Of a DNA stretch of 64,000 nucleotides, positions 10,193-60,926 are shown piece by piece. A model generated the notes under the pieces. It did no database searches and had not been told where the DNA came from. It worked only from the letters and a program-made list of their open reading frames with translations. The position numbers were made by a program, and so were the translations under genes. Every line of letters begins with the position of its first letter. Position 1 is the stretch's first letter. This DNA comes from Selaginella moellendorffii (lineage: Eukaryota; Plantae; Lycopodiophyta): assembly GCF_000143415.4 (NCBI RefSeq), contig NW_003314300.1:360385-424384 (forward strand). Direction: 5' to 3'.

Positions 10193-10681
10193 AAACCAAT
10201 CCTCATCCAAGAAACGGCGCATGACATCTTTCAGCTCTGGATCTCCCCGGCCCTTGACCCGTGACTCCAAGCGATCATGCTTCTCGGCCAGCTGTTCACC
10301 AAGCTCCTCGATCTGGTGATCGACTTCACTGTCTGGAATCGCTATTCTCTGCCATTGATTGCAGAACTGTTGGAAACAGATTGGGAGACCGACGATGGAC
10401 ACGAGCGCTACAAGCAGCAGGGTATCGTCAAGAGTCAACAATTCCTAATCGCAAGTCGTAGTTTTTTGGAATAGTCCCACGTTGTTGATAGCTCTGGAAC
10501 GAAGGCAAAATGAATTCAATTTACAGCACAGTTGCACTCGTCGTTAAATGCTTTGGGGCTTGAAGAAAGATTGAATTACTTTTGAAACTAAATTGAATAA
10601 AAACCGCTTTCTAAGGGTGGTTTATATTCATACCATATAGGGTGCAAGAAACATTTATTTCGTCGTTTATTTACCACCCAG

Positions 10682-13369: not shown

Positions 13370-13684
13370 TCTTCAGGAGTGCAATGCAATGGAAAATCTC
13401 TAGCTGCTTTCCGAGCATACCCGGGGTTTGATATAGAGGCGACACCAGTCAGCATTCTGATCAGATGTACTGTGTGGGCCTTCACGCGCTCAATTTTTCT
13501 TTAGTCGCGATGTTGATCTGGCTGGCCCATCCGACCACTAGTAGTGGACCCGCAAACAGCCAATGGGGTTGTGTGTAGTGCGGCCCCCCCCGTGAAAAGA
13601 AAATTCGAGAAGCACATTAGGCTTCGTCCATCGATGATCCTGCATGTAAAAACATTCTCTTTACAAAGAAAGTCGATGAACAAG

Positions 13685-13849
<165 letters not shown>

Positions 13850-14544
13850 TCACTTCAACCCTGGAGCCTTTACTTTTGAGATACTTGTGGTGATTAGATC
13901 CATATGTATGCAAGCCTGAGGTGGTGAATCTGCTGTTTATGAGGCGGTATGTGGCACTGGCTTTAAACTTAGTGTGGTACTGGTATGAGTATGCTGATGC
14001 GAGAATGACGCCTAGAAATTCAGCCGCAAACAGACTCTACAATTAAGATATCAGGCCGAGGCAGGTTGCAAAGTGCTGAAAGACAGTTCTAGGACAAATA
14101 ATGCTGCTGCCAAGCAGGCCAGCATTTCATTGTTTCTACATCTTCACATCAAATGCCCGTCTAACTATCACTTAGTCAGATATCATCGTCGGGAGCACGC
14201 AGAAATGCGGCCACATAGCTCTTTTGAGATTTTAGGTGAAGTAAAAAAAATTCAAAAAACTATTACGTGCACGATGAAGTTGGCCATGCCCAGGGCCAGC
14301 GGCCCATTTGGAGGTACCCAGACGAGCACACTTAACTCTTGCCCGAATTTCACCTCTTTATACTGCTCTAGTATGTGGGCTCACCTGAAAACTAACCTGA
14401 AACAAAATGAAAGCAACAAACACGCGTTGACTGAAGAGGATTCTTTATATCATGAGATTTGTTTGACCAGTCTCACATTTTATGACGGAGGAAAACGGGT
14501 TAGCGATAATTTTCACTCACGCTGCTCGAACTTTCTTCACAACC

Positions 14545-15185
14545 AAGTCGCTACTAAAACCAGGAGCACTCCTCTTCACTCCACAGTGCCTCCTCCTGTG
14601 GATAGTCTTCTTGATTTTACTGCTGCAATTTTCCACGATCCAGGGATGCTCCAGCACACCATCCAGTGTCAACCTCTAGCTCGGCTCCACAGCCAGCATC
14701 CCGGGAATGTGGACAACCATCCGGGAATCCCTGGTTCACAACAACTCGATCTCCCTGGATTGCTTGTAGCCTTTCAGCAGCTCATATGCGATCACTCCCA
14801 GTACCCATATGTCAATGGCCAGCGTCCAGCTGTTCTCCGGCTTGAGATTCCGGTGGACGATGCTGCTGGTATGTATCCCCTTGAGCGCCTTCACCAGACG
14901 CTGGATGGTCTTGGCGGCCTCCTTCTCACCCAGCGGCCCTCCCTTGATCAATCGATGGCACAGACTAGGGCCGCACAGCTCCATCATCATGGTCCCGTAG
15001 CAAGCCCCGCCACTCCTCTCCCTCACGAAGCCCGCCAAAGAGACCAGCCGTGGAGCTTGGACATGAGCTAGAGCTCTCTCCCGGCCTCCCTCCCCAATTT
15101 AAACATAGCTCATGGCGCCCTTGAGCATCATCATCCTCGATGACGATACGGCACAATCGTCATCCTCGAACTCACTGTCGCACCA
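14545..15185 (-). pseudogene. Deleted copy of the kinase-like gene at 22290
   Basis: MMELCGPSLCHRLIKGGPLGEKEAAKTI...HRNLKPEN joins directly to AIDIW, so DFG and APE are deleted; further indels are present. Confidence 0.9.
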
Positions 15186-21290: not shown

Positions 21291-22289
21291 CGGGACACCA
21301 CTGATTCAAGTGAAGTCATATCCTAGATAAAAGAGCCTGTAATGTAATGCAATGTCTCTTTGTATTGCCAGTAGACAAGTATATTATGTGGGTGTTGGAG
21401 GAGCTGAGGTGGAGTCTAAGTTAAGAGTCCCTGTCTGGTGCAGGTGGGCGACTGCTCTGCATATGCTTGCTTGCTTTGCTTGCCACCACAATGAGCATTG
21501 TGGTTGAAATAGTTATAAATTTAAACCTTTGATCTTTTTCAAGAGATATTTTGAGAAACAGAAAAATCTGGTGACCTGATGATGCCCAGTGCGGGCAATC
21601 CAAAGATACACGAGCACCTACAGACGCTTCTTTCATGCTGTGACGATCAGGGCGATGGAGAAGAGATCCATGCTTGTGTCGTGAGGGCTGGCATCGAATG
21701 GGACGTCGCCATGTCCACTGCATTGGGGCGCTTCTGCTCAGTGGACTCGACCTTAAAACTCCCAAGCTTAAAAGTCTTAGCTACAGCATAGCTCTTCCAT
21801 GCCAGAGCACTGACTTCTCCAGCCAGCCGAGCTTTCTGGAGTGATTCCTTAGAATCTCTGTGGCACACACTCCTCAACCGAACAAGGTTGCCCTGCTCCA
21901 GAGCCAAGCAAGACCTCGCCAGCCTAAGGAACGCAACCTTATGTGTCCTTGCTTCGCTCACTCCCTCCACCCCTCTTTGCTGCTAGCATAGGCCGTGATC
22001 AAGAATCCCAATAGAAGACGTTCTTGTCGGCGATGCGCGTGCGTCGTGCGCGCTGCCATGTGGAATCGCAGCTGCCCGCTTCCAGGGCATTGGATCTGCC
22101 ACTTCTCACTAGAAAATATTCTAATTGTTTAGAGAATATTCGCGGCTAAGCACATCGGCACCGTTGATAGTCGATCACATCTCAGCCGTCGGCGAAACGC
22201 CATCCCAGCCGTCGACATATAGTCGTTATGGGTTTCTACCCTTTTATTTTTCATATCAAGGAAGCTTGCGCGAGAGGAGAAGCTCTGCG

Positions 22290-23189
22290 ATGGTGCGCGA
22301 AGACGGTGAGTTCGAGGACGATTGTGCCGAGCTCCTCAAGATCCACACGAGGGGCCAGAGGCTGGGCTGCGAGGGCCAGGGCCAGGTTTTCGTGCTCAAC
22401 GCCGGGAAGATGTTTCAATCGGGGAGGGAGGCCGGGAGAGAGCTCCGGCTCATGTCAAAGCTCCGCGGCTGCGCTGGAGTGGTCTCGTTGGCGGGCTTCG
22501 TGAGGAAGAGGAGCGGCGGGGCTTGCTACGGGACCATGGTGATGGAGCTGTGCGGTCCTAGTCTGTGCCATCGATTGATCAAGGGAGGGCCGCTGGGCGA
22601 GAAGGAGGCCGCCAAGACCATCCAGCGGCTGGCGGAGGCGCTCAAGGGGATACATACCAGCGGCATCATCCACCGGAATCTCAAGCCAGAGAACATCTTC
22701 GTCAAGCTGGACGCTACTGCCGTGCACGAGGTGGTGATTGGAGACTTTGGAGTGGCCACGGACGACCCCAAGGAGATGTCGCAGTACTATGGAACCGGGA
22801 AGTATATGGCCCCGGAGGTGACGAGCTGCAAGGGTGGTCATGGCGACGCAAGAACGCAGAGCTTTTACACTACGGCCATCGACGTGTGGGCGCTGGGAGT
22901 GATCACATATGAGCTGCTGAGAGGCTACAAGCAATTCAGGGAGATCGAGTTGTTTCGAGCCGGAGAATTCCCGGATGGTTGTCCTCTCTCAGACGAGGCG
23001 GAGGATTTCATCTGTGGGATGCCGATCGAGAGGTTGACGCTGGATGGTGTGCTGGAGCATCCCTGGATCGTGGAGAATTGCAGCAGTAAGATCAAGAAGA
23101 CGATTCATAGGAGGAGGCGCTGTGGAGTGAAGAGGAGTGCTCCTGGTTTTAGTAGCGACTTGGTTGTGACGAAAGTTCGAGCAGCGTGA
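22290..23189 (+). CDS. Intronless CAMK-like protein kinase fold, catalytic HRD->HRN (probable pseudokinase), 299 aa
   Basis: LGCEGQGQVF, MVMELCG, HRNLKPEN, IGDFG, GTGKYMAPE, DVWALGV, LEHPW. ATG at 22290. Confidence 0.8.
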   Translation: MVREDGEFEDDCAELLKIHTRGQRLGCEGQGQVFVLNAGKMFQSGREAGRELRLMSKLRGCAGVVSLAGFVRKRSGGACYGTMVMELCGPSLCHRLIKGGPLGEKEAAKTIQRLAEALKGIHTSGIIHRNLKPENIFVKLDATAVHEVVIGDFGVATDDPKEMSQYYGTGKYMAPEVTSCKGGHGDARTQSFYTTAIDVWALGVITYELLRGYKQFREIELFRAGEFPDGCPLSDEAEDFICGMPIERLTLDGVLEHPWIVENCSSKIKKTIHRRRRCGVKRSAPGFSSDLVVTKVRAA

Positions 23190-24197
23190 GTGAAAGCCAA
23201 TTATATTATCGCTAACCCGTTTTCCTCCGTCACACCGCTCTTAAAATGTGAGACTGGTCAAACAAATCTCCATGATACAAAGAATCCTCTTCAGTCAACG
23301 CGTGTTTGTTGCTTTCATTTAGTTTTCAGGTGGATTGTTGTGTTTGAGCCCACATGCTGGAGCAGTATAAAGGGGTGAAATTCAGGCGAGATTTAAGTGT
23401 GCTCGTCTGGGTACCTCCAAATGGGCCGTTGGCCCTGGGCGTGGCCAACTTCATCGTGGTCTTTGATTAAACGTCGTTTTTTTTGAATTTTTTTAAAAAA
23501 ACTTCACCTAAAATCTGTGGCGTAGAAAGCCATTAGCGTGAAAGTGATAGTTGGTTTGAAGATGCAACTTTAACATGTTGCAACTAAAAACAGTGAAAGC
23601 ATTATTTGCCCTAGAGCTGTCTTTAAGCACCTTGCAACTTTGCCTGATATTTTAATTGTAGAGGTCTGTTTGTTTTGGTTTTGGTTGAATTTCTAGGCGT
23701 CATTCTCGCATCAGCATACTCATACCAGTACACATACCGCCTCATAAACAGCAGATTCACCACTTCACAAGTATCTCAAAAGTAAAGGCTCCAGGGTTGA
23801 ATTGACACATATTCTCCTATCCGCACTAAGAGCTTACGCAGCTTTGAACAGGAACGGCTTGTTCATCGACTTTCTTCGTAGAGAGAATGTTTTTACATGC
23901 AGGATCATCGATGAACGAAGCCTAATGTGCTTCTCGAATTTTTTTTTATCTGCAATGAGTGCTGTGCATTGTTCCTGTTCTGCTGCAGTGAATTGCTGGG
24001 GGAAGTGGCAGCACTACAACCCCATTGGCTGTTTGCGGCTCCACTACTAGTGGTCGGATTCAAATCGCAACTAAAGAAAATTCGAGTGCCTGAAGGCCCA
24101 CACAGTACATCTGATCAGAATGCTGAGCCTCTATATCAACCCCCGGGTATGCTCGGAAAGCAGCTAGGGATTTTCCATTGCATTGCACTCCTGAAGA

Positions 24198-26875
24198 ATG
24201 GCACCACTAATCGCTTTTCTTATTCTTTTGGCTCAAATCCAGTGCTCGATGGGAGAGGTAAGTATTTTTTTGAGTCTACAGCGGCGCTAACTGGTGCCAT
24301 CGTAGGTTTATATAGTCTACATGGGGAAAAAAACCATTGAAGACCACGAACTGGTAACGAAATCCCATCACGAAACGCTGGCCAGTGTGTTGGGAAGTGA
24401 AGATTTGGCAAAAGGTGCTATCTTGTACAGCTACCGGCATGGATTCAGCGGTTTCGCAGCAGATATGAATCCAGGGCATGCAAAAGCTTTGTCCAGTAAG
24501 TGGCTATGCTCTCAGTTTTCAGGCTAATACTTCTGTAACAGAGATGCCTGGAGTTGTGTCTGTGTTCCGCAGCAAAAAGGTGAAGCTGCATACAACTCAC
24601 AGCTGGGACTTCCTTGGACTGGATCTCATGAAGCCCAACGGCATTTTGCAAGAATCTGGCTTCGGAGTGGACGTAATTGTTGGGGTTGTGGATTCAGGTG
24701 TTTGTTAAGTTTCACATTCTAGTGTGCAGCAGATACCAAATTTCGGAACTTTTCTGCAGGTGTATGGCCTGAAGCTGAGAGTTTCAATGACAAATCAATG
24801 CCAGCAGTTCCCACAAGATGGAAGGGAATATGTCAAATAGGCGAGAACTTCACGGCTTCAAACTGTAATAGGTTCGTTGTTGGGACCTCCGAGTGACTTG
24901 GAACAAGGAAGTATAACCGTTTACTCTATGAATGCAGGAAACTTATAGGAGCTCGATATTTCAACCAAAGTGTGGATCCTAGCGTGGAGGACTACAGATC
25001 ACCCAGGGACAAAAACTCTCACGGCACGCATACATCGTCGACCGCTGTAGGCAGGCTCGTTTATGGAGCCAGCGATGATGAATTTGGCAGCGGAATAGCT
25101 CGTGGTGGAGCACCAATGGCCAGGCTTGCAATGTACAAATTCTATGAAGAGAGTAGCAGCTTAGAAGCAGACATTATTGCTGCAATCGACTACGCAATTT
25201 ATGACGGAGTCGACATCCTGTCCATTTCTGCAGGCGTGGACAATACGTACGAGTACAACACGGATGGCATTGCAATTGGCGCATTTCATGCAGTCCAGAA
25301 TGGGATTTTGGTTGTGGCAAGTGGTGGCAATTCGGGACCATATCCATCCACAATCATTAACACTGCTCCCTGGATTCTGAGTGTGGGAGCAAGCTCTATT
25401 GACCGGGGTTTCCATGCAAAGATCGTTCTTCCCGACAATGCTACCTCTTGCCAGGTTTGCAAAATGACTGTATGAACCTTCATTTTTGAAGTTTTTGGAC
25501 AGGCAACGCCATCACAGCACCGGACCGGTTCTAAAGTTGGATTGCATGGAATTGCCTCTGGGGAGAATGGGTATGCATACATTCGGACACTAGTATCTCT
25601 CTGATGAGGTGAATTCTGTGCAGCTATTGTACAGAAGCGACATTGAATGGTACCACCCTGAGAGGGAAGTATGTCCTTTGCGTTGCTTCCAGCGCCGAGC
25701 TTCCCGTGGACATGGATGCTATCGAAAAGGCTGGAGCCACCGGAATTATAATCACCGATACAGCCAGATCGATAACAGGAACCTTGTCGCTCCCTATATT
25801 TGTAGTTCCCAGTGCATGCGGTGTGCAGCTCTTAGGTCACAGATCACATGAGAAGTAAGCCAGATCGATCTTGTTTATCTTCATCATTTGAACTTGCCTA
25901 CCTCCAATTGCAGATCGTCAACGATCTATATCCATCCACCTGAAACTGTGACCGGGATTGGACCAGCCCCTGCTGTTGCAACCTTCTCATCCAGGGGACC
26001 AAACCCAATTTCTCCTGATATTCTAAAGGTTTGTGAGTCATTTGGTTTCCAAATTCAAACATCTGATATATCACCGGCATTGCAGCCTGATATCATTGCT
26101 CCTGGCGTTGACATAATCGCTGCTATTCCTCCAAAAAACCATTCAAGCAGCTCAGCAAAGAGTTTTGGAGCGATGAGCGGCACGTCCATGTCCTGTCCTC
26201 ACGTTTCCGGTGTTGCGGCTTTGCTTAAATCCTTGCATCCAGATTGGAGCCCCTCCGCAATCAAGTCTGCAATTATGACAACAGGTATTGTGGGTTTTGC
26301 AAGTTCTGTCCTGAAGTATCACGCTTGCAGCTTGGAACATGGACAACACAAGGGATATAATAACTGATAGTTTCACACTAAGTTATTCCAACCCCTTCGG
26401 ATATGGAGCAGGACACATCAATCCAACCAAAGCAGCAGATCCAGGCCTTGTTTACGTTACCACTCCTCAAGACTATGCTCTCTTCTGCTGCAGTCTGGGC
26501 AGCATTTGCAAGATTGAACACTCCAAATGCTCGTCTCAGACTCTAGCAGCCACTGAGCTGAACTATCCCTCGATAACAATCTCCAACCTGGTGGGAGCCA
26601 AAACAGTGAAAAGAGTTGTGACAAACGTAGGGACACCATGCTCAAGTTACAGGGCAATCGTGGAAGAGCCGCATAGCGTCAGAGTTACAGTCAAACCGGA
26701 CATTCTCCATTTCAACAGTTCCGTGACAAAGCTGTCTTATGAGATCACGTTTGAGGCTGCTCAAATAGTTCGTTCAGTGGGGCACTATGCTTTTGGCTCC
26801 ATCACTTGGTCAGATGGCGTCCATTATGTACGGAGCCCCATTAGTGTCCAGGTAAACGATTTCATTCGTGCTTGA
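24198..26875 (+). CDS. Subtilisin-like serine protease (S8), copy B
   Basis: Same exon structure and intact D/H/S triad as copy A. ATG at 24198. Confidence 0.95.
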
Positions 26876-27504
26876 CTGGGTGGTAAATAAACGACGAAAT
26901 AACTGTTTCTTGCGCCCTAAGCGAGAATCATCTATGGTATGAATATAAACCATAAGACTTTGGTTTCAAAAGCAATTCAATGTTTCTTGAAGCCCCAAAC
27001 CATTTACCATTTCAGTTGGCGAGTGCAACTGTGTTGTAAATCATTCATTTTGCCTTTGTTCCAAAGCTATCAACAACGTGGGACTATTCCAGAAAACTAC
27101 GACTTGTGATCAGGAATTGTTGACTCTTGACGATAGCCTGCTGCTTGTAGCGCTCGTGTCCGCCATCAGTCTCCCAATCTGTTTCCAACAGTTCTTCAAT
27201 CAATTGCAGAGGATAGCGATTCCAAACAGTGAAGTCGATCACCAGACTGCCGTCCTAAGATGCTCCAGTTGCAAAATTCTCCTCAATATCGTACTGGCAG
27301 TTGACCCTTTGACTCTTGTAAAAGTCAACATAGTATTATCTTCAAATTATGTGAGCTCATTCCTTAGACACCACATTTTCTTAACAACTAAGTTTGTTTA
27401 ACAGGTGTCAAGCTCAAAGCTACGTGTTGGAATCGACGTAGAACAGGTTTTCTTTCATCCCGAGAGCCCTCCCCCAAACTAGCTGAGAGATCCTTCCATC
27501 CCAA

Positions 27505-29036: not shown

Positions 29037-31247
29037 TCAAACGCTGGCCAGCAAGAGATCATACCCAGCGCCATCCCTGGCATCCATCCTCACCAGATTC
29101 TCAAACGCGGCTCTGGCGAGATCATAGCTCTCCCACCGCCGGCAAGAGCTCAAGATCGTCCTCCACGCCACCGCATTCGCCCGGAAGGGCATCGATCGCA
29201 GCAGCTCCACCGCGGCATCCAGCTCGTTGGCTCGACCCAAGAGATCCACCATGCACACGTAGTGCTCCATCTCCGGCTCCACGCCATACCTCTCCGCCAT
29301 CGCCGCGAAGAACTCCTTCCCCTTCTCCACCAGCCCGCCGTGGCTACACGCCGCCAGCACGCTCTGGATCGTCACGGCGTTGGGCGCCACTCCGTCCTCG
29401 ACCATCGCTCCAAACAGCGCGATCGCGCGCTGGGACTCGCGGCTGTGGGCGGTGATGATCGACGTCCACGCGATCACGCCTCTGGATCCAGCGCCATCGA
29501 AGACGCGATCCGCGAGGAGGAGAGCTCCACACTTTCCATACGCGTCCACCAGCGCCGCCACTAGAATCTCCTCCTCCGCCAGCCCCGACCGGCAAATCTC
29601 GCCATGGATCACTCGCGCGGCGTCCAACGCCGCCGCCATCGCCGCCGCCTTGAGCCCCGCCGCGTAGCAGTGAGCGTCCGGCGCGATGGAGCTCGCGCTC
29701 GCGAGGATCATGCTCCAGAAGAGATCCAGCGCCGCTCCAGCCTCGCCACTCTCGCAGCACGCCAGCAGCAGCGACGTGATCGCCACCACGTCGCAGCGAT
29801 CGATCGACTGGAAAGCTCGCCGCGCGTCGTCCAAGCTCCCACACTTGGAGTAGAGATCCACAAGCGAGCTCGCCACCTTGCTCGAGACGTCTAAAGCTCG
29901 GGAGTGGAGCTCCATCCCTCTCTCCAGAGCTCCAAGCTTGACGAGCTTGCCCTCGTCCATCTCCACGCTCTCCTCACGGGCCGCCATAGCCATGCAAGCT
30001 TTGAGCGCTGGAAGAAGAATCGAGCCACTGCCGCCACCGCCGCCACTTGGATCTTGTCTCATCCATTCAAGAGCTAGCTCCACGGCGAGCTCAGGCGCCT
30101 CGTTCTCCGCATAGCCGAGCACCAAAACGTTCCACGACACGGAAGTGTGAGCCGGCATCCTATCGAAAACCCGGCGAGCATCGACCAAGCTTCCACACTT
30201 TGCGTACATTCCCAGCAAGCTGTTGGCCACGAAGGTGTCCGAGTCTTGTGAAGATCTCGCTGCCTGAGAGTGAATCGCCATCCCGGTTTCCAAAGCTTCC
30301 AGCTTTCTTGCATCAAACGCTCGGGAGCTTCTTGCCAAGACTGTCTTTCTTCCATCAACCTGGGCGCTCTTTCCCGGGAGAGTTTCCATCCTTCTTCCAT
30401 CGATCTGTGAGCTATCTTCCTGTTGAGAGCTCCTTGCCGAGGCTTCCATCTTCCTCCCATCCATCTGCGGCTTTCTTTCTGCCTTTGTTCTGTCTCTCTG
30501 CAAGGCGATTGTCGTGCAAGCCTTGAGAGCAGCGACGAAAGCTCGAGCGTTGGGAGCGCAGCCCCGGCGTTGCATGCTCCCAAACAGCTCAAGCGCCGTC
30601 TCTCCCTGCCCGTTGTCCGCGTAGCCGAGCATGAGAGCGGTGTAAGTCACAACGTCGCAGCTGGGCATCTTGTCGAAAACTCGCCGAGCCAGCACCAAGC
30701 TCCCACACTTTGCGTACATGTCCACGAGACTGCTCGTCACAAAAGCGTCCGACTCGCAGTGCACCATCGCTGCCTGTGAGTGAATTTCGAGGCCTTGCTC
30801 CAGAGCTCGCAACTTCAAACGAGCTCCGTCGCGACTTTGTTGCTCAGCTTCTTTCGCTGCCAAGTTACTGCAAGCTCTGAGGGCGGCCACGAAAGTTCCA
30901 GCATTTGGAGCGTAGCCTCCGAGTTTCATGTGGAAGAAGAGCTTGAGAGCGAGCTCTTCTTCGCCATTGCTTGCGTATCCCAGCATGAGAGCGTTCCAGA
31001 GAACCGTGTCCTGGTTGAGAGTCGAGTCGAAAACCTTTCGTGCCTCCCCCATGCTCTCGCATTTTGCGTACATGTTGATCAAGGAGGTGGCGATGAATGT
31101 GTCCGACTGCAGCCCGATCTCGGTGGCTCGAGAGTGAAGGATTTTTCCCGTGCGGAGGTCTCTTGAGCTCGTGCATACCTTCAGCGCAGCAAGTAACTTG
31201 GATCTCGCTGCTCCGTTTGCAAGCATACAAGGATGCAAAGGCTGCAA
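29037..31247 (-). CDS. PLS-class PPR protein with E-type end, intronless, 736 aa (candidate organellar RNA editing factor)
   Basis: Repeated MYAKCGSL..ARRVFD.M, WN.L..GYA, ACSHGGLV, HYVCMVDLLGRA, AWRTILSSC. No DYW domain. Confidence 0.92.
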   Translation of the reverse strand: MQPLHPCMLANGAARSKLLAALKVCTSSRDLRTGKILHSRATEIGLQSDTFIATSLINMYAKCESMGEARKVFDSTLNQDTVLWNALMLGYASNGEEELALKLFFHMKLGGYAPNAGTFVAALRACSNLAAKEAEQQSRDGARLKLRALEQGLEIHSQAAMVHCESDAFVTSSLVDMYAKCGSLVLARRVFDKMPSCDVVTYTALMLGYADNGQGETALELFGSMQRRGCAPNARAFVAALKACTTIALQRDRTKAERKPQMDGRKMEASARSSQQEDSSQIDGRRMETLPGKSAQVDGRKTVLARSSRAFDARKLEALETGMAIHSQAARSSQDSDTFVANSLLGMYAKCGSLVDARRVFDRMPAHTSVSWNVLVLGYAENEAPELAVELALEWMRQDPSGGGGGSGSILLPALKACMAMAAREESVEMDEGKLVKLGALERGMELHSRALDVSSKVASSLVDLYSKCGSLDDARRAFQSIDRCDVVAITSLLLACCESGEAGAALDLFWSMILASASSIAPDAHCYAAGLKAAAMAAALDAARVIHGEICRSGLAEEEILVAALVDAYGKCGALLLADRVFDGAGSRGVIAWTSIITAHSRESQRAIALFGAMVEDGVAPNAVTIQSVLAACSHGGLVEKGKEFFAAMAERYGVEPEMEHYVCMVDLLGRANELDAAVELLRSMPFRANAVAWRTILSSCRRWESYDLARAAFENLVRMDARDGAGYDLLLASV

Positions 31248-33319: not shown

Positions 33320-34090
33320 TGGCGGAGATCATGGCAAACTGCCAAACTCCCGCCGGCTGAGCCCCTTGGTCAATTTAGTCAACTCTTGGCCCAGTCAAAC
33401 GAATTCCAAGAGGAGAGAAAGAGAAATCTAGGTCTTGCTCGCCCACCGCTTCGTGAAATTTTGATCTGGGCACTCCAACAAGAGGCGAAGAACACCACAT
33501 TGAGGTACTCGCGCGTGAATTCTTAGCTTGGATTGTTCTGGCTTGAATACATTTCTTCCCACATGATCTCTACAAAACTTTGTTTTCCAGGTAGATTCTC
33601 GTAGAAAGTACGCGCTTCGAAAGAAATGCGCACGAATTCTCTACGCTAAGAAACGCTGTCTACTTTTCTCCATAAGTATCTCGTCGTCTCCATTTCTTTC
33701 CCAATTTCCACTCGAGGTACGCTATCCTTTGGTCAAAAGCTTCTTTTTTTTCCTTCTTCCTCTTTTGTTCGTGCGTAAGCACTACGTAAGTGTGATCGAG
33801 AGATCTCTCGCATGGTTTGGCAGTGAATTCGTGTGCTTGTGTGTGTGTTGCTACCATTGACGGTGGCTGTCGCTGTGGCCCCTCCTTCCACTTTGTCCTT
33901 TCTTCCACTCAGTGGAGAACATCTCATTCGTTTTCTGGCGAGAGCTAAAGTTGTGGAGCGATAGCCTGTGCGTGTGTGTGTGTGTGTACTTTTGTTCCTC
34001 TTCCTAAGGCTGCGCCCCCTTTGTTTCTCATTGTTTTTGCTCGTCCCCCTTTTCAACAGGCTCCGGGTTTCCATCGTCGCTGCGCAGAAA

Positions 34091-34682
34091 ATGGCTTCTT
34101 TTCGCAAGATAGTGCTTGCATCACTACTATCATGCTTGCTCCTCGCCGCTGTTGCCACTGAAACCGAAGGTAGAGCGAGCCTTTCTCTCTTTTGTTTTCT
34201 CCTTTTTTACTCTAGAACCGATTGTGTTCCTGATTCTTCCGTGGAATTCTAGCAGATGAGAGCTTGGTGGCAGCACAGGACCAGGTAAAAACTCTTGTTT
34301 TCTCGTTTTTTCGTACTGTTCTTTAGCCGCGTGATAGGATCTCTTTTAACTTTCATTCGTTCGTATTGCATAATCTCACCCCCACTGTGTCTTCGCCTTT
34401 CGAGACTAGTAGATGAGGTAAAAAGCTCTTTTTCTTTTTGCTGCGTTTCGCCACTGTTCTTCGCGTAATCTCCAGTTATTAAAGCTCTTCGTTTTCGCCA
34501 AAGAACTTATACTTCCTATTCTTCAGGCTCTTAACTTCGACCGTGGATTCGCCATGGAACAGATGCTATCACGGATCCAGAGCAAAAAGCTTCGTCGCGA
34601 GAGAAACTTGGTCCACACAAACGACTACGCCGATCCATCGCCAAACACCGATCCAAAGCGCGGCCCGCCGAAATCAGGATAA
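34091..34682 (+). CDS. Secreted tyrosine-sulfated peptide precursor, PSY-like (#1), 88 aa; exons 34091-34169, 34253-34284, 34527-34682
   Basis: Signal peptide MASFRKIVLASLLSCLLLAAVAT. In-phase GT-AG splicing gives ...KLRRERNLVHTNDYADPSPNTDPKRGPPKSG*, resembling PSY1 DYGDPSANPKHDP. Confidence 0.82.
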
Positions 34683-35030
34683 GTATAGAACTCGTTGGAA
34701 GCGCGTGTAAATTTACTCTACGCGGATATCAAGTCCATGGTTGTTTTATACATGGCTGACTCTTTGGCTTCCTCAAAGGAAGCATAGTGTGTTTTGCTGG
34801 CCAGCATCAACAATGAATCTATAATATACAAATGGTTTGTGGCTTATAATGCTGGTAGAATAGTGTTCTATCAATTTATAAGCAGCAGCTTGCAGAGAGG
34901 CCAGCCACAATATATGACCACTTTGATGGTGTGAGCTGACCGAGTGGAACAAGTGCTGTTGTAAGAGCTAGGGAGAGCTAGGGAGAGTTTAAATGTGAGT
35001 GTGGAGCTTCCGGAGAAGCATAGAGAAAGC

Positions 35031-35392
35031 ATGGGCGTGTTTGCGAGAAGCATGCGTTTGCTCGTTTGTCTCATGATCTTTGCTGCAGTGTTGATCTCAC
35101 AAGCTGAAGTTGAAGCTTTCAAGGATGGAACAAAAGGTAACTTTTTCCGTGGTGTTCTTCCTGCTAAGATGAATGCAAGCTTAAAAAGAGTCTCTTTTGT
35201 TGCTCACAGTGGATAAGGGTTCTTTGCCAAGGAAGGTTGTGAGGAATTTCAAAATGCTGGTAAGTTCATTCTCAGATCTTTTGAGATGTTTAAAATCTGT
35301 GGAGCCTTGTTCTGCACTTGCAGGAAGATAAGAAGTACCATTCAATTCATGTCACTGATTACGATGACCCTTCACACAACACACGGCCATGA
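35031..35392 (+). CDS. Secreted tyrosine-sulfated peptide precursor, PSY-like (#2), 74 aa; exons 35031-35136, 35210-35259, 35324-35392
   Basis: Signal peptide MGVFARSMRLLVCLMIFAAVLISQAEVEA. Spliced C-terminus EDKKYHSIHVTDYDDPSHNTRP*. Intron phases (1,0) match #1. Confidence 0.78.
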
Positions 35393-35499
35393 TAAGAGAA
35401 AGAACTCGGACCCCCACTGTCTTTCAACTCCTTGTTCTCCCCTTCGACTATCTTTTGTCCTCGTAACTGAGTTTAACAAAATCAATGTTCAGAATATTC

Positions 35500-36690
35500 T
35501 ATGAAGATTTATAATTCTTACATGCTTAAGAATAATCGAAATCCCTAGTAGTATAGTTATGAACTCTTTAAATTCAATATGACATATGATACAGTGGATT
35601 ACAGTATGTTATATATATAGTTAGTATTAGAAAATAGTATGCAAAGATGGATTTGTTTTTGTCACAACAAGAAATGAATTTACTTAATTTACAATTTTTT
35701 GTCCAAAAAAAATATTAATTTTTTTTAAAAAAATATGACATATATTTTTGTTGTAATCATTAATTAAAGCTTATAACTCGAGGAGTTAATACTTTTTGGC
35801 TCCATGCCTAAAATAAAATATGAAGATATATTTATATATTTTTAACACATACTTTAGTAGACCTTTCAATATAGTAATTATATATATTATGTAAATTAAA
35901 TAAATTTTAATATTACTTAATTCAAAATATATTATATAACTTGATAATTTTACTAAATCTTTCTATTGGTATTGATACCAAGATTTCTTTTAGGAAAGTT
36001 TTTGAATTTGACGTTTGATGTATTGAATATTTTTTATAATTTTCTATATTTAGAATATTTAATATAAAAATCATTAACTTTTGATTCTGTATATAATAAT
36101 AATAATGATTATATTAATTTAATTTTGATTTGATCAATAAACAAAATCACTATGGTGATTTGATGTGAATTTGAAGGTAATATTTAAATTTCTTGAGATC
36201 ACTCTTTACATAAATATAAATAAATAATAATTATTTTTATGCTGTCAGATGGGGTGCTTAATTCATAAAAGTTTTGCTAAATCAACTAAGCTTTAGCCCT
36301 TAAATAATAGATTTTTTTTAGATATTTAATTAAATATAACCTTCATATAGATTTTACTTGAAAAAACATTAAAGGTCATATTTATTTAATTATATTTCAT
36401 CATCTATAAAAAATAAATATCTAAATATTTAAATTTCTAATCTTTAAGAGAACATATTTTATGTTGTTTTTTTTGAAACTAAATAAAAGTAACTCATAAG
36501 CAAGAGTTTAATCAAAAATTAGTATTTTAGATTATTAAATTATTTATATTTATTAATATTTAATGAATATCGTCCAAGTACTTTTAATAATTTTTATGTT
36601 TTAAAAAATTAAAACTTCTTAGAATCGGTTATCTATTTTAAACATCAATAAATCCTCTATTTTAACTTATTTAAAAGGAAAACAAAATTC
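35500..36690. other. Very AT-rich non-coding island (probable decayed TE)
   Basis: Abrupt composition shift, no ORFs, CpG nearly absent. Confidence 0.5.
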
Positions 36691-36715
36691 TTGAGTTTCT
36701 ATTGTTTTGGGAGTG

Positions 36716-37554
36716 TCATCTCCTTCTATCATTGTCTCTTAATCGCCTGCCATCATCATCAACACGGCTCTCCCTTCTCGGAGATCTCTTCCGAGACTCT
36801 AAACGATGCCTTTCACCTCTCGACTCGTCGTGTCGATCGTGTTTCCACTTTGTCTCGTCGTCCGCTCCCCATCCAGTGTTCTTGTTCCTCTGAAGAAACA
36901 AGTTAAAGAGACAAATGTAAACATCTGAACGATTCAACTCACGTTTTCGTCGTGTGAGAACTTGCAGGAATCGCCCCGGCTACAGCTTCCGCGCTGGAAC
37001 TCGTAGCAAACACCGTTTTCTTCTCGTTTCTTCTGCCGCTCTTCCTCGTCTTCCTCTTCTTTCTTCCGATACTTTCTCACATGATCCACACGCAGCGTGC
37101 GTCCAGCGACTTGAGCTCCATTCAGATTATCTGTGCATCAAATCATCAATCAACCAGAAAGTTTCGGAAAAAATCCAGAGAAACTTACTCACCCACGGCA
37201 AGTGTGGTGCTTCGTTGATCTTCGTACGCGAGAAATCCATAGCCCTTTGATTTCCCGGTACCTTTGTCGCGAATTAAATTCACATCCACAACTTCGCCGT
37301 ACCTATCCCCCCCCCCCCCCCCCCCCCAAACAATCGATAAGAGCGAAGAAGCATAGAGATCTAAACGAAAGAATCACTTACTGTGCAAACACCGCAAGAA
37401 TATCGCCCTCGTTGAGCTCGTACGCTAGCCCGCCAAAGAAAATGTAGGCCGAATCCTTGTACTCGGCGTGCCAGGATGCAGACTCGGCGATCCCAGACGC
37501 ACTCTCCCGGGCAGTGATCTTCTGGAGATTCTTCACCTGCGTCAAGGGATTCAT
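36716..37554 (-). CDS. RBMX2: RBMX2/Snu17(Ist3) RES-complex RRM + CCCH zinc-finger splicing factor
   Basis: MNPLTQVK...SWHAEYKDSAYIF.GGL, YGEVVDVNLIRDKGTGKSKGYGFLAYEDQRST.LAV-DNLNG...RVDHV, CYEFQRGSCSRGDSCKFSH, RD/RS-rich tail. Confidence 0.92.
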
Positions 37555-37822
37555 CCCTCAAGAACCCTAATTTCAAGAACCCTAACACAAAGGGCAAAAG
37601 TGGGTTTATAAGAATATGCGAATCTTAGTTAAAGATTCGCCCTCCACTTTAGCTAACACGTGAGTGACGTACGGCGCGCTCGATCGTGGAGCTTTAAACA
37701 AAGGCTAGCTAGAACACGAAAAAAAAGAGACTAGAACGCGGCTAGCGCGAAGTCAAATAAATGAAAATGGAGGAGCTTCTCATTGTTTGTTCCTTGGATC
37801 TTCTCATCTTTCGTATAAGATC
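37555..37822. promoter_or_regulatory. Shared divergent promoter region with telo-box-like AACCCTAA x2, G-box CACGTG and TGACG
   Basis: AACCCTAA at 37563 and 37578, CACGTG at 37656, TGACGT at 37664, between two head-to-head ATGs. Confidence 0.45.
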
Positions 37823-38108
37823 ATGGCAGCGCAGCAGCGTTTACTTGCGATCATTCTCTTGGCGATCCTGGTGGGAATTTCGCTGCTAGCAAATTCCATC
37901 TCTGGAGCTGAAGCTCGTCCACTGGATCATCAAGGTCTGTGTGAACTTTTCACAATGTTTTCCCTTGAAGATCTTCCATACTTTGTTCTTCCCAGACGAT
38001 CACTATCGTTCTCTCGTCGAGGAAGACGGGGACTACGCACCGACGTCGAACCAGAGAGATTTCCAGAAGAGCCACGGACCTGTGTCTTCCAAACATCCTG
38101 GAAACTAG
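37823..38108 (+). CDS. Secreted DY-motif peptide precursor (#3), 74 aa; exons 37823-37934, 37996-38108
   Basis: Signal peptide ending AEA-RPL. Spliced C-terminus DDHYRSLVEEDGDYAPTSNQRDFQKSHGPVSSKHPGN*. Confidence 0.72.
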
Positions 38109-38186
38109 AGAGTAAGCTCTACACTGTGTCCATCCAGTACCTGGTTTTTCCTGTGAAAATCTATGTAGACTATTTCTTCAAGTGTT

Positions 38187-39116
38187 CTACAGTCCCAATT
38201 CCCTCTCAAAGTCGTCGTCCTCTTCAAAGAGTTTGATGAAGCGAGCCTGCTGTTCTTCGCGTTTCTTCTGCTGCCACTTCGTGTAGCCGACGATGCCGAG
38301 ACCCGCGACCATGAGAAAGCTAAAGAGGGCCACCAGCGCTGTGATCGCTGCTCTTCCATGGCCGGAAGAGGGAGCTTGAGGCTCGTCATTGCTAGAACCT
38401 GAGTCTGGAGCGTCTAGCAACAAAACGAAAGGAAAGTCATACAAGGAAAGCAAGCAAAGAAGGAAGAACTCTCACCGAGCGACTGAAGAAACGTTGCATT
38501 GAATTCACCCTTTTTGAAGTGGAAGTACCGGCCACTCTTGTCGAAATCGTCTGGGCAGAGCTCCCACTCGTCGAAAACGCCGTCTTTGAGGAACTCGTTC
38601 TTCTCATACACTCCACACCGCTTGCATCTCACACCGACGAGCGATGTAAGTGGCTGAAGTAAATAAAATAGACTTGGATGAGAACTCTAGAAAAGAAACG
38701 ATCGAAGCAAGCAGAAAAACTATCGAGACTAAAACTTGGATGAGAACTTTCGAAAAGAAGCGATGATCATCGCAGCAAGCAAAAAAAAATCGAGACTACA
38801 CTATTTGGAGCGAGCAAACTTACTTGCCAGGATTCATGGCCAGCAAATTTGTAAATCCGGTCCTTCTCCTTCACATCGGGCAAATCCACCTTGTTCTCGT
38901 CCCTACACTTGAAATACAAACTCGGCTTGTGCCCCAGCCATTCGTGCGTCCGGAAAATCGCTAGCGATTCTAGAGTAACATTCTGCGCAGAGACTCCTAC
39001 ACAAGAAAATCAACAATCTCGCCTAGAAATCGCCAGAACTATCCATCATACGCACCTAGGCAGCAGCTGATGATCTCCAGCGCGCACAGCGCGATCCAGC
39101 AGCGAAGAGCACCCAT
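38187..39116 (-). CDS. Conserved plant type-I membrane protein of unknown function, multi-exon
   Basis: Signal peptide, VTLESLAIFRTHEWL..P..YFKC...LPDV...ESWQPLT...CKRCG.YE...FDEWELCP...EFNATF, TM segment, WQQKKREEQQARFIKLFEEDDD.E.ELGL. Confidence 0.85.
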
Positions 39117-40396: not shown

Positions 40397-40656
40397 AAGA
40401 GCATACAAAAATACTTGTACGATATTGGAATGGAGCCACGATTCCAAAGAATAATCTCGTGAACTTAATTACAAAGAATAATCTCGTGTTCTTGAAAGAA
40501 CCAAGTTTCCAGGAAGTAAAGTTTACTCTCTTTTAGTGGAAAGTTACGTTATAATCCATCAACGTAACAGCCACGGCAGCGTGAGAGCGTCCGTCCACGA
40601 CGTGAATCGTGGAATATCGAAGAGTTATTTTCAGCATTCGAGGCAGAGAGACGACT

Positions 40657-42147
40657 ATGGTGAAGAAGCGATGGGTCGGGAACTCGGTGGTGATCCTTCT
40701 CCTGGCACTCTTCTTCTTCCGAGAGATCATCGTGGACACTTTCTTCCCTCTTGGCACCTGGACGAGGACGAGTTCTTCCACAGACCCTTCACTCCTGATC
40801 CAAAGGTCTGCTGCTCTTCCCGTAGCTCCAGTCCCGCTGAGACAAGCCTTCGCAGGAAGAACTCTCAACGTCTCCGACCGTGTTCTAGAGCTAGCTCCTC
40901 CGGGGATTAGAACAGAGTTCGAGGAGAACAGGAACGTCGACGGCTATGGACTCACAGTCGTCAGAAACGCTTGCTTTCTTCCTGGAGGAGAGATCGTGTT
41001 AGTAAACATCACAGACGAGTACCTCAACCAGACGCTCTCGGCATCGCCCAAGCTCCAGGAACTCTGGAGCGCCGGTTACAATTCCACTTGCGGGTGGTGC
41101 CAGAAGACCGGTTCGCAGCTCTCGCCGGAGGCTCCAGAGGGCGCTCGGTGGATCCCCGGGAACACCACCCACATCCTTCCATACTTGGGGAACGTCTTCC
41201 ACAACTTTGCCGAGCGGATCTGGCCACACCTGGCGTCGCACCACCCCCCGCTCAACCAGACAGCCATGCAGCCGATCAATCACTTCCTGATCCACAAGTT
41301 CACCACCTGGATCGAGCAGGCCGACGCCGGAAACCACGAGCGCGAGAACTTCATGCTCCAGTTCCGGGTACTGGCCGAGCTCTCCCCCGGCTCGGACTTC
41401 GTCGTCATGGACTCGGCCGGCCAGAACCACCCCGTTTGCTTCGAGCGGATCACACTGTCTTGCTCCTCCTGCGACCGGATGTCCACCACCCTCGGCCACC
41501 AAGTCTTCTCGGCCTCCATCACCTCGTACCGCGAGGCCGCCTTTAAGTTCTTCGGCGTCCCGGAGCCAGCGGTCTCGGCTCCACCCCGGCCACTAAGAGT
41601 AGCGTTCTACGGCCGCAGTGACACGAGAAGACGTCGAGTAGCAAACGCTGGCGAGGTGATGGAACACCTCCGAGCTTGGGACAGTCCACCGCTTGATATC
41701 CTCTTCCTGGACGAGCTTCTTTCGGACAAGCGTTACAACCAGACCATGCCGGAGGCGGTGGCGCTCTTCTCACACACCGATGTGCTCGTCACTGTTCATG
41801 GAGCGAATACTTGGGCGACTATGTTCATGCCACGCCGTGCTGCTGTGATCGAGATATACGGCCCCTGCGGCCCCGGGACTTGGATCGACAACGTCGCGAG
41901 AGCTCTCGATCTTAAGCACGACACGACGTCGAATCCATGGCGAGACAAGGTGGCCTCTCCTCTGGCTGGAAACACCACCCAGTGTGAGGGAGCTATACAA
42001 ACTCCAGACTTCACCTTGGATACGATCAAGCTGGACGAGGCCATCGCAAAGTTGGCGCTGCCTACGGGGCCCTTGGATCGGATTCCACTGCACTGGTTAT
42101 ACGACTGGAAGAAACGAGCGTACGCTACTCACTTGGTGGAGGGGTGA
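40657..42147 (+). CDS. Glycosyltransferase family 61 (DUF563)-like type II membrane protein, intronless
   Basis: N-terminal TM, NVFHNFAE, VCFE, R..RRRVAN..E, DVLVTVHGANTWATMFMPRRAAVIEI. Confidence 0.8.
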   Translation: MVKKRWVGNSVVILLLALFFFREIIVDTFFPLGTWTRTSSSTDPSLLIQRSAALPVAPVPLRQAFAGRTLNVSDRVLELAPPGIRTEFEENRNVDGYGLTVVRNACFLPGGEIVLVNITDEYLNQTLSASPKLQELWSAGYNSTCGWCQKTGSQLSPEAPEGARWIPGNTTHILPYLGNVFHNFAERIWPHLASHHPPLNQTAMQPINHFLIHKFTTWIEQADAGNHERENFMLQFRVLAELSPGSDFVVMDSAGQNHPVCFERITLSCSSCDRMSTTLGHQVFSASITSYREAAFKFFGVPEPAVSAPPRPLRVAFYGRSDTRRRRVANAGEVMEHLRAWDSPPLDILFLDELLSDKRYNQTMPEAVALFSHTDVLVTVHGANTWATMFMPRRAAVIEIYGPCGPGTWIDNVARALDLKHDTTSNPWRDKVASPLAGNTTQCEGAIQTPDFTLDTIKLDEAIAKLALPTGPLDRIPLHWLYDWKKRAYATHLVEG

Positions 42148-58228: not shown

Positions 58229-60829
58229 TTATTGTGCTGTGATGTCTCTGGCCTTTGCCGGCTCCATCAACTTTTGCGCATCCTCAACCCTGCCAAGCTT
58301 GATCAAGCTCTCGGAAAGGATCCTAAACGTCTCCGGGTTTGGCACCGCGCCGCTCTTCCTCGTCGCCTCAAACACCGCATAAGCCTGGTCGATGTTTCCC
58401 GTCTTGCAAAGCCCTCCAACGAAGCTCACGCAGCTCACGGGATCCAGCAAGAACTTCTTCTCCCTCATCTGCTTGTAAACCTCCAGAGCTTCGTCCAGCT
58501 TCGTCGCTCGAGACAGTCCCGCGATGAGGATGCGATACGTGCAAGAATCAGCCGCGAGACCTTTGGTTCCCATCTCCGCGACGAGCTCGTTCGCTCGGCC
58601 CAGCTTCCCCAGCTTGCAAAACCCATCGATGAGCGTGTTGAAAGTCACAATCGTTGGCTGCAAGCCTGCGCCGCCGGACATCTCCCTGTAGAGCTTTTCG
58701 GCCTCGTCCATGCTGCCCCTCTTGCAGTAGCCGGCGATGAGCGAGTTGTAGGCCACCGCGTCCGGGGGAATGCACGCTTGAGTCATCTTCTCGAAGAGCT
58801 CCCTGGCTTGGATCACCTTCTCGGCCCGGCAAAGCCCCGAGATGAGAGTCGTGTAAGTGTACTTGTTTGGCTTGCATCCGGCCTCGAGCATGCTGCCGAA
58901 GACTTCCAAGGCCTTCTCCAGTTCCCCCGTGCGGCACAGCCCGTGGATGAGCGTGCTGAAAGTGATCACGTTTGGGACGTAGCCAGCAGCTCGCATCGCC
59001 TCGAAGAGCTTGCAGCCTTCTTCCACCCTTCTGGCTTTGCATACCGCGTCGAGCAGCGTGTTGTAAGTCACCACGTCCGGAGAACACGAGTGGCTCTTCA
59101 TCTCGGCGAACAAGGTGTTGGCTTGCTCAAGCTGGCCGGAGGAGCACAGGCCGTGGAGCAAAACGTTGTAAACGGGGACGTTTGGTTGGCAGCCGTGCTT
59201 GGGCATCTGCTTGAAGCGTTCCGAGGCATCTTTCACCTTCCCCGCTTGGCAGAGGCCGAGTATGAGCTCGTAGAACATAAGTCTGTCCGGGTGGTGGCCG
59301 CCTCGAATCATCTCGTCGAACAGGCTGCTCGCGTGGTCGACTCTCCGCGCCTTGGCTAGCGCTCGAACGAGGCTCGAGTACGCCTGCATGGACGGCGTCT
59401 GTCCTCTCATCACCATCTCGGACAGGATCTTCAAGGACTCGTCAAGCTTGCCAATCTTCGCGAGGCCGTGGATGAGAATGTGGTACGAGACGTTGTCCGG
59501 CTTGTATCCGCTTTCCACCATATGTTGGTATACTTCTCTCGCCTTCTCCATGTTGTTGGACCTCGCAAAGCCTTGCATGACGCCGTTGAAGGCAAACACA
59601 TCGGGGTTACACCCGGCTGCCATCATCTCTTCCAAAACTTTGTAGCTCTCCTCGGGCTTTGCCTCCTTCACCAGGCTCTTGATGATGGAGCTGTAAGTAA
59701 AGACGTTGGCCGCGATGTTCTTGTCTCTCATCTCGGACAAAAGCTTCCTGGCACCTTCGGTGTTCCCCGAGCTGCAAAGCCCGGATATGAGAGTGTTGTA
59801 AGTCCATCTATCCGGCTCCACTCTCTTCTCGCGTTTCATACTCTGGAACAGATCGAGAGCCTTTCCAAACTCACCAGCGTTGCAGCGGCTGTTGATGAGG
59901 ACGTTGTAAGTTACGAGTGACGGTACGCAAGACTCGCTCTTCATCTTCTCGAAGACTTCCAGTGCCTGTGCCAGCATCCCCGCTTTAGCCAAGCTTTGCA
60001 CGACGAAGTCATAAGCGTCACCACCTATAGCACACTTGGCCTTGCTCATTCTTTTCAAGATCTCGTAGACGCGAACTCCCTTTCCGGCTTTCCCAAACGC
60101 TGCAACGACGGCCGACCAAGTCTTGGACTCCACGGCCACCTTTTGCGATCCCAGGCAGTCTAGCACGCTCTCGATCTCTGCGAGACGCTCCTCCGGCTTC
60201 GCTGCGAGGAGCTGGATCAAACTCTCCAGCGTCGTCGAGGATCGAGGAGCAAAGTTGGATGCTACCATCGTCTTGAACGCGTCGAAGGCCTTGTCCGTGG
60301 AGTTCGTCGCGACGAGAATCTCGAGAAGAACGTTGTGGACATCCTTCTCAGCCATGAAACCATTCTCTGCCGCGATCATGGCCTCGCAAGCCGGTATCAA
60401 AAGCTTGGATCGACCATCTCTCACCAAGCTGTGAAGAACGAGCTTGAAAGTTTCCTCGTCCACGTCCAAGAAGCCCGGGCCGCGCTGCTGGATCTGCTGG
60501 ACGAGCTGGTTCACGACTCTCTTCTGGGCATCGAGGGAGACGCTGGAATGAGAGTAACCGCGCTGGCCTTCCACCCAGCTCAAGAACTTGAGCGCTACTC
60601 GGCGATCTTTGATGGATTTCACGACCTCCACGGCATGCTGGGGCTCTACAAGGCCAGCATTTAGACCCTCGAGCCTCTTCGCCGTGTCGGGCGTCCATCC
60701 CCCACTGAGAACGCGGCCGATCGTCTCAACCACGTCGATCTTCTTGGAAATCTTGGCCCTTGTGCTCGCCAATCGCGACTGGAAATTCCTGGAGCTGCTA
60801 CTTACCTGATTGTAGCACGAGCGTAACAT
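58229..60829 (-). CDS. P-class PPR protein, intronless, 866 aa, organelle-targeting-like N-terminus
   Basis: Tandem 35-aa PD/PN..TYN.LI.GLC repeats and an R/S-rich N-terminus. Confidence 0.95.
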   Translation of the reverse strand: MLRSCYNQVSSSSRNFQSRLASTRAKISKKIDVVETIGRVLSGGWTPDTAKRLEGLNAGLVEPQHAVEVVKSIKDRRVALKFLSWVEGQRGYSHSSVSLDAQKRVVNQLVQQIQQRGPGFLDVDEETFKLVLHSLVRDGRSKLLIPACEAMIAAENGFMAEKDVHNVLLEILVATNSTDKAFDAFKTMVASNFAPRSSTTLESLIQLLAAKPEERLAEIESVLDCLGSQKVAVESKTWSAVVAAFGKAGKGVRVYEILKRMSKAKCAIGGDAYDFVVQSLAKAGMLAQALEVFEKMKSESCVPSLVTYNVLINSRCNAGEFGKALDLFQSMKREKRVEPDRWTYNTLISGLCSSGNTEGARKLLSEMRDKNIAANVFTYSSIIKSLVKEAKPEESYKVLEEMMAAGCNPDVFAFNGVMQGFARSNNMEKAREVYQHMVESGYKPDNVSYHILIHGLAKIGKLDESLKILSEMVMRGQTPSMQAYSSLVRALAKARRVDHASSLFDEMIRGGHHPDRLMFYELILGLCQAGKVKDASERFKQMPKHGCQPNVPVYNVLLHGLCSSGQLEQANTLFAEMKSHSCSPDVVTYNTLLDAVCKARRVEEGCKLFEAMRAAGYVPNVITFSTLIHGLCRTGELEKALEVFGSMLEAGCKPNKYTYTTLISGLCRAEKVIQARELFEKMTQACIPPDAVAYNSLIAGYCKRGSMDEAEKLYREMSGGAGLQPTIVTFNTLIDGFCKLGKLGRANELVAEMGTKGLAADSCTYRILIAGLSRATKLDEALEVYKQMREKKFLLDPVSCVSFVGGLCKTGNIDQAYAVFEATRKSGAVPNPETFRILSESLIKLGRVEDAQKLMEPAKARDITAQ

Positions 60830-60926
60830 CGCTCGCCATCGTCATCGCGGCCTCATCTCTCTACCCTAGCAAAATTCGTAGGGTTCTTCGCGACCATGAG
60901 CTGGGCACTTCTTCAAGAAATCTGTG

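Follow-up and report, generated by a model that had tools for sequence, protein, structure and literature searches.

Three small genes at the locus

A 64-kb stretch of the genome of the lycophyte Selaginella moellendorffii (contig NW_003314300.1, positions 360,385 to 424,384), referred to below as the window, contains three small genes, g1, g2 and g3, which lie on the same (+) strand and encode predicted secreted precursors of 88, 74 and 74 amino acids, respectively, each with an Asp-Tyr (DY) motif towards its C-terminus. The gene models were rebuilt from the window sequence, of which positions 33800 to 38400 were read, and are presented in Table 1. They reproduce exactly those of a preliminary description of the region, in which three co-oriented, spliced small genes were proposed, each opening with a signal-peptide exon, followed by a phase-1 intron, and with a DY peptide at the C-terminus.

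Every intron of the three genes has GT..AG borders. The first coding exons are 79 (g1), 106 (g2) and 112 (g3) nucleotides long, which places the first intron in phase 1 in each gene. It is apparent that the three N-termini resemble signal peptides, with a basic n-region, a hydrophobic core of 12 residues (mean Kyte-Doolittle value 2.85 to 3.38) and AxA-like small residues at -3 and -1; this reading was made with a heuristic of our own, based on charge, the Kyte-Doolittle core and the -3/-1 residues, and not with SignalP. The DY dipeptide occupies residues 70-71 of 88 in g1 and 64-65 of 74 in g2, and additional acidic residues are situated close to it in all three peptides. In g1 an in-frame stop lies upstream, and the start codon at 34091 is the first ATG to follow it in frame. 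The non-coding 5' exon of g1 was placed from loose contig ends of 117 to 140 letters that precede position 34058 in two sequencing runs (X3 and X8), the 30-letter consensus of which is identical to positions 33685-33714.

Table 1. Features of g1, g2 and g3, in positions of the window. Runs are the four sequencing runs from which contigs were aligned; UTR, untranslated region
Feature	Position	Strand	Remarks
g1 coding sequence	34091-34169, 34253-34284, 34527-34682	+	88 amino acids, C-terminus ...HTNDYADPSPNTDPKRGPPKSG*
g1 non-coding 5' exon	33577-33716	+	start approximate; joined to 34060 across GT..AG intron 33717-34059
g1 start-codon exon, signal-peptide-like, phase-1 intron after	34060-34169	+	ATG 34091; joint 34169/34253 in 4/4 runs
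g1 internal coding exon, 32 nucleotides	34253-34284	+	both flanking joints in 4/4 runs
g1 last coding exon: pro-region, peptide, stop	34527-34682	+	3' UTR contigs to ~34813
g1 predicted mature peptide DYADPSPNTDPKRGPPKSG, 19 amino acids	34623-34679	+	best of 13 reference peptides AtPSY5/AtPSY1, shuffle 39/2000
g2 coding sequence	35031-35136, 35210-35259, 35324-35392	+	74 amino acids, C-terminus ...VTDYDDPSHNTRP*
g2 exon 1, signal-peptide-like, phase-1 intron after	35031-35136	+	joint 35136/35210 in 3/4 runs
g2 exon 2	35210-35259	+	model and contig joints
g2 last coding exon	35324-35392	+	contigs continuous to ~35514
g2 predicted mature peptide DYDDPSHNTRP, 11 amino acids	35357-35389	+	9 of first 10 residues as in AtPSY2; shuffle 3/2000
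g3 coding sequence	37823-37934, 37996-38108	+	74 amino acids, C-terminus ...EDGDYAPTSNQRDFQKSHGPVSSKHPGN*
g3 exon 1, signal-peptide-like, phase-1 intron after	37823-37934	+	joint 37934/37996 in runs X1, X2
g3 exon 2 with DY peptide region 38031-38105 and stop	37996-38108	+	model and contig joints

Transcription and splicing

Words sampled from a 4.2-kb stretch at the locus were found, at fractions of 0.20 to 0.39, in 20 sequencing runs from nine studies. Contigs from four of these runs, belonging to four studies, were aligned to positions 33900-38300. That the runs represent RNA was only guessed, but the contigs are RNA-derived as judged from their GT..AG joints, from three CT..AC joints at which a minus-strand neighbour (36641-37557) is spliced, and from zero depth in all four runs over an AT-rich spacer (35517-36545) that served as an internal control.

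All five coding introns appear in the contigs as joints at exactly the modelled sites. Both g1 introns were observed in all four runs, both g2 introns in three and the g3 intron in two. Junction support, which had been named beforehand as a check of the exons, was thus obtained for every coding intron, with as many as four independent studies contributing. At the g2 stop codon the contigs are continuous and gapless, so the stop is real and the shortness of the g2 peptide does not stem from faulty assembly. The g3 gene is represented in run X3 only by an unspliced contig (37775-38125), which indicates intron retention. In the unspliced form the g3 frame continues into an open reading frame (ORF) of 149 amino acids (37787-38236), from which the DY peptide is missing. 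If the g3 transcript starts that far 5', an upstream ATG at 37761, out of frame, would open an overlapping ORF of 42 amino acids.

Two allelic forms, each at approximately half depth, were present in all four runs (sites 34315-34694, 37911 and 38060), which points to the presence of two diverged haplotypes in the line that was sequenced. The haplotypes differ at two positions of the g1 coding sequence (34670 and 34676), both synonymous, and by seven substitutions and a 3-nucleotide indel in the second g1 intron; in g3 there is one E-to-G change just past the signal peptide and one synonymous difference.

The first two genes, g1 and g2, are tightly packed, separated by 348 bp (34683-35030) from stop codon to start codon. 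The 3' contigs of g1 end at ~34813 and those of g2 begin at ~34907, and low-depth contigs span the gap in run X8; read-through transcripts of g1 and g2 are possible.

Relationship of the three genes

The peptides of g1 and g2 follow a common pattern, H..DY.DPS.NT.P, with the block DY[A/D]DPS[P/H]NT[D/R]P, and in both precursors [V/I]-H-x-x directly precedes the DY. This block is identical at 9 of 11 residues, as against 13 of the 63 aligned residues that precede it (~20%; Fisher p 1.7e-4); the full-length proteins are 30% identical over 73 amino acids. Five of the nine conserved block residues are encoded by different synonymous codons in the two genes, and no DNA similarity between the two loci was detected by blastn, which together indicate that the block has been held by selection since an old duplication. 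A variable pro-region followed by a selected C-terminal block is a pattern typical of the precursors of post-translationally modified peptides. In the six-frame translation of the window, DY.DPS.NT.P occurs twice, at the g1 and g2 peptides, and it did not occur in 100 Markov-1 simulations. On these comparisons, g1 and g2 are best read as old, anciently diverged tandem paralogues.

No similarity of g3 to g1 or g2 was found at the protein or the DNA level, and a comparison of each locus with the window at the DNA level revealed no further copies of any of the three genes. Moreover, g3 is situated 2.4 kb from the g1/g2 pair, with the minus-strand gene and an AT-rich, silent stretch of 1 kb in between. 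The old, diverged tandem array of three genes that had been proposed is therefore reduced to a tandem pair plus a neighbour: its age and divergence apply to g1 and g2, but the inclusion of g3, dissimilar and separated from them by an unrelated gene, is not supported.

Similarity of the g1 and g2 peptides to PSY

The peptides were aligned with a reference panel of 13 peptides, comprising AtPSY1-9 (PMC11534595) and AtRGF1, MpRGF, AtCIF1 and MpCIF (PMC8462819), and each score was compared with those of 2000 shuffles per peptide in which the DY and the composition were kept. For both g1 and g2 the top scores in the panel were obtained with AtPSYs, not with RGF or CIF. Of the first 10 residues of the g2 peptide, 9 are those of AtPSY2 (DYDDPSANTRHDP), and the score was reached by 3 of the 2000 shuffles (p 0.0015); the best partners of g1 are AtPSY5 and AtPSY1 (39 of 2000; p 0.02). 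Scores of g1 and g2 against RGF and CIF were at chance level (234 and 578 of 2000). The shared DY.DPS.N matches AtPSY1 and AtPSY2 at 6 to 9 of the first 10 positions. Among exact peptide strings searched for in the literature, only the DYDDPS of AtPSY2 was matched. In an embedding-based (language-model) search for look-alikes, a 'PSY3-like' cluster ranked third for g1 with a score of 0.86, below the level at which the tool regards a match as more than a lead.

Further likenesses are apparent outside the core. The tail of g1, DPKRGPPKSG, resembles that of AtPSY5, DPRRRPGGKG, and its GPP stands at the place of the modified VPP in AtPSY1; the residues preceding its DY, RRERNLVHTN, are reminiscent of the PSK4 site RRSLVL/HTDY. 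[quoted passage not shown] Their precursors are of 70 to 110 amino acids, in which a signal peptide is followed by a variable pro-region and by a conserved block at the C-terminus that opens with Asp-Tyr, and the predicted layout of g1 and g2 is the same.

Membership of the PSY family has been tied to the motif DYxxxx[AP]NxxHxP, in which DY, N, H and P are kept in 31 of 32 aligned PSYs, and to criteria that include a precursor of 60 to 200 amino acids with the motif in its second half (Tost et al. 2021, PMC7913133). Both g1 (88 amino acids) and g2 (74) agree with these in length and in the position of the motif, and all three peptides open with the Asp-Tyr of a TPST site. At positions 7 and 8, g1 has Pro-Asn, and g3 has neither residue in register.

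Several observations weigh against an assignment of g1 and g2 to PSY. In g2, positions 7 and 8 are His-Asn, of which the Asn fits, but the His is neither Ala nor Pro. Position 11 is Pro rather than His in g1, Pro followed by the stop in g2, and Phe in g3. In g1 and g2 a Pro is found at Asn+3 and not at Asn+5; position 13 is Arg in g1, and the g2 peptide has already ended, at residue 11. The His11 and Pro13 are present in moss PpPSY1 (DYEKPCANKKHDP...) and in all nine AtPSYs, and the canonical PSYs compared, moss included, have N-x-x-H-x-P throughout (with Asp for Asn in AtPSY9), unlike g1 and g2. The His is also retained in the PSY mimics of other organisms, the bacterial RaxX and those of root-knot nematodes.

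Database searches likewise lent no support. When all the signal-peptide exons and all the last exons were scanned with Pfam, nothing was returned except one sub-threshold chance match. A word-index protein search with the last exon of g1 and the last-exon ORF of g3 gave no candidate, though proteins of 88 and 74 amino acids would qualify. An exhaustive HMMER search with the g1 and g2 alignment against 1.84 billion protein representatives gave no match at E <=0.001, a result that is expected of an 11-residue block, which cannot reach significance, and that says little about distant relatives. Given the absence of a match at the database level, the similarity to PSY rests on some 8 to 10 residues. 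The lack of matching proteins in large protein collections does fit with the suggestion that the genes are under-annotated, as far as g1 and g3 are concerned, both of which are apparently unannotated.

The conclusion that the first two peptides fit PSY is accordingly to be narrowed: it holds for the N-terminal half, DY.DP..N, but the His11 and Pro13 of the family motif are missing. With two family-defining features absent, g1 and g2 were classified as PSY-like and not as members; they probably represent a shortened, histidine-less PSY-like variant, and are not proven PSYs.

The same missing His and N-x-x-H-x-P spacing could also be explained if g1 and g2 formed a lineage-specific family of sulfated DY peptides, convergent with the N-terminal half of PSY or long split from it, and perceived by a receptor other than PSYR, such as a leucine-rich repeat (LRR)-XI kinase of the RGI or GSO type. 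Non-canonical 'PSY-like' families of moss, with shifted H and P positions, do behave unlike PSY (10.1101/2024.05.13.593875), families of DY peptides are hard to tell apart (PMC8462819), and the exhaustive HMMER search revealed no relative. Such a family is nevertheless considered unlikely in view of the agreement of DY.DPS.N with AtPSY1 and AtPSY2, of the chance-level scores against RGF and CIF, and of the lack in both peptides of the C-terminal His-Asn or Asn typical of those families.

The region following the Asn in g2 was inspected further. At 35381-35392 the frame reads P-stop-stop after N-T-R, and the +1 frame reads H-D-K, where AtPSY2 also has H-D. This H-D may be the trace of an old 1-nucleotide frameshift of the canonical motif, or it may be due to chance. 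A frameshift of this kind would agree with g1 and g2 being decaying or non-hormonal descendants of PSY, still transcribed but deprived of activity through the missing His region (in g2 also through the early stop 11 residues from the Asp); the absence of His11 from both, and of relatives from the g1 word search and the exhaustive search, point the same way. Independent decay would, however, not be expected to leave the N-T-x-P ending and the whole 11-residue block in both genes despite saturated synonymous change. In addition, no damage is seen in the reading frames, the splice sites or the signal-peptide-like regions, transcripts occur in three to four studies, and the haplotypes differ in the coding sequence of g1 by synonymous changes alone. 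Decay is thus regarded as very improbable, and the shortened PSY-like variant remains the preferred reading for g1 and g2.

The g3 peptide and comparison with other families

The g3 peptide scored at chance against PSY (952 of 2000 shuffles) and against all other peptides of the panel. Of the cluster of three tyrosine-sulfated, PSY-type hormones that had been put forward, g1 and g2 can thus be retained as PSY-like by sequence, but g3 stands at chance against PSY, RGF and CIF alike. It could still be a highly diverged third PSY-like member, altered by a deletion of one residue after the DY and an insertion of five residues before H-G-P. It has in common with g1 and g2 its orientation, a similar size, an intron in phase 1 behind the signal-peptide-like exon and, towards the C-terminus, a DY flanked by acidic residues, and its best gapped alignment, to AtPSY3, places DYA-PTSNQR.....HGP against DYSDPTANGRHDP. 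The score of that alignment, however, lies at the shuffle mean, the ...HPGN end is unlike that of any PSY, the look-alike search of the Atlas (blank for g2 as well) and the word search gave nothing for g3, and its dissimilarity to g1 and g2 and the intervening gene and silent DNA count against a third copy. Membership of g3 is distinctly unlikely. It is instead a separate transcribed gene for a predicted small secreted peptide, which has its DY in acidic surroundings, ends in a free Asn and fits no known peptide family.

Other families of sulfated peptides were compared and rejected. RGF/GLV/CLEL peptides resemble those described here in having an N-terminal DY, which is sulfated in RGF, in being rich in Pro and in lying at the C-terminus of a small secreted precursor, and many of them end in Asn, as does g3. 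The peptides of g1 and g2, however, have no P-x-[H/S]-N end, no terminal Asn, chance-level scores and no Pfam match; g3 ends in HPGN, but its DY and Asn span 25 amino acids, as against ~13 in RGF, and its score is likewise at chance. CIF and TWS1, the ligands of GSO1/2, are loosely similar to g3 in their DY start, greater length (~21 amino acids) and C-terminal Asn; their core DYxxxxPxPPLxxPxPF is absent from all three peptides, and scores against AtCIF1 and MpCIF were the lowest in the panel. The YIYTQ of PSK is lacking, and no Y[IV]YT is encoded in any frame of the window.

A further parallel is provided by the moss PSYL1 and PSYL2 (10.1101/2024.05.13.593875), which, like g1 and g2, are DY peptides of non-seed plants with off-canonical spacing and were missed or mis-annotated and then recovered from transcripts. 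PSYLs range over mosses and one liverwort, have shifted H and P positions, and are reported to affect growth or reactive oxygen species (10.1101/2024.05.13.593875). [quoted passage not shown]

Proposed maturation and biological context

The observations made here concern the structure of the genes, their transcription and splicing, the conservation between the paralogues and the likeness of the motifs. Secretion, sulfation, processing, receptor and function of the g1 and g2 peptides we infer by analogy with the PSYs of Arabidopsis and moss. In angiosperms, PSY-PSYR signalling balances growth against stress responses, and in moss it controls growth. If g1 and g2 follow the same route, the signal peptide would be removed in the endoplasmic reticulum and the Tyr after the Asp would be sulfated by TPST in the Golgi, with prolines possibly hydroxylated or arabinosylated. 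A subtilase-type protease would then cut immediately before the DY, and the sulfopeptide would be released into the apoplast and bind a PSYR-clade receptor kinase of the LRR type. TPST needs an Asp before the Tyr plus flanking acidic residues (PMC13074997), as are present at the sites of g1, g2 and g3.

S. moellendorffii has been reported to possess a TPST and, within the At1g17230/At2g33170/At5g63930 clade, one receptor (Furumizu et al. 2021). That clade is the one of AtPSYR1-3, and both of the moss proteins in it function as receptors for PSY. Putative PSY orthologues have been listed for P. patens, M. polymorpha and P. abies (Furumizu et al. 2021); in the literature searched, PSY ligands are named for moss, liverwort, gymnosperm and angiosperms, and none for a lycophyte. 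The g1 and g2 peptides are concrete candidates for this gap, in which TPST and a PSYR-clade receptor are reported and no ligand is named. With their His missing, they also allow a cheap and direct test of the PSY residues on which the receptor depends, and the approach used here, in which RNA junctions are combined with paralogue comparison, recovers peptide genes that are missed by annotation based on ORFs or homology.

It is conceivable, though rather doubtful, that lycophytes use a shortened PSY ligand that lacks two residues and the His, which is otherwise invariant from moss to angiosperms. Were this so, either the sulfated octapeptide DYxDPSxN would be the real receptor-binding core, or the lone PSYR-clade receptor would have co-evolved a different pocket; the latter would represent a natural switch of ligand-receptor specificity in an ancient hormone system. 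On this view, g3 would be the founding member of an additional, undescribed family of DY peptides.

Surroundings of the genes

The minus-strand gene between g2 and g3 (36641-37557) has introns at 36890-36942, 37131-37192 and 37300-37378 (CT..AC). Its product, read by eye from ORF translations, combines an RRM-like region at the N-terminus with a motif like that of a CCCH zinc finger, and one of its introns contains a run of ~20 C.

Further upstream, an inverted duplication of 3.3 kb with 95.6% identity (10312-13575 and 24012-27246) contains parts of subtilases (Peptidase_S8), in the ORFs 12081-12584 (-) and 24972-25475 (+). Subtilases process peptide precursors, but the location of these parts 7 to 20 kb from the peptide genes may be coincidental. 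A second inverted pair, of 86% identity, is found at 14270-14820 and 22874-23458.

A long terminal repeat (LTR) retrotransposon-type element is indicated at 286-7480 (+) by long ORFs with reverse transcriptase, RNase H and integrase domains, as observed in a Pfam scan of 2857-4596 only. PPR genes are situated at 29037-31247 (-), 58229-60829 (-) and 60924-63095 (+). There is also an ORF for a kinase at 22125-23189 and one for a GT61 glycosyltransferase at 40609-42147.

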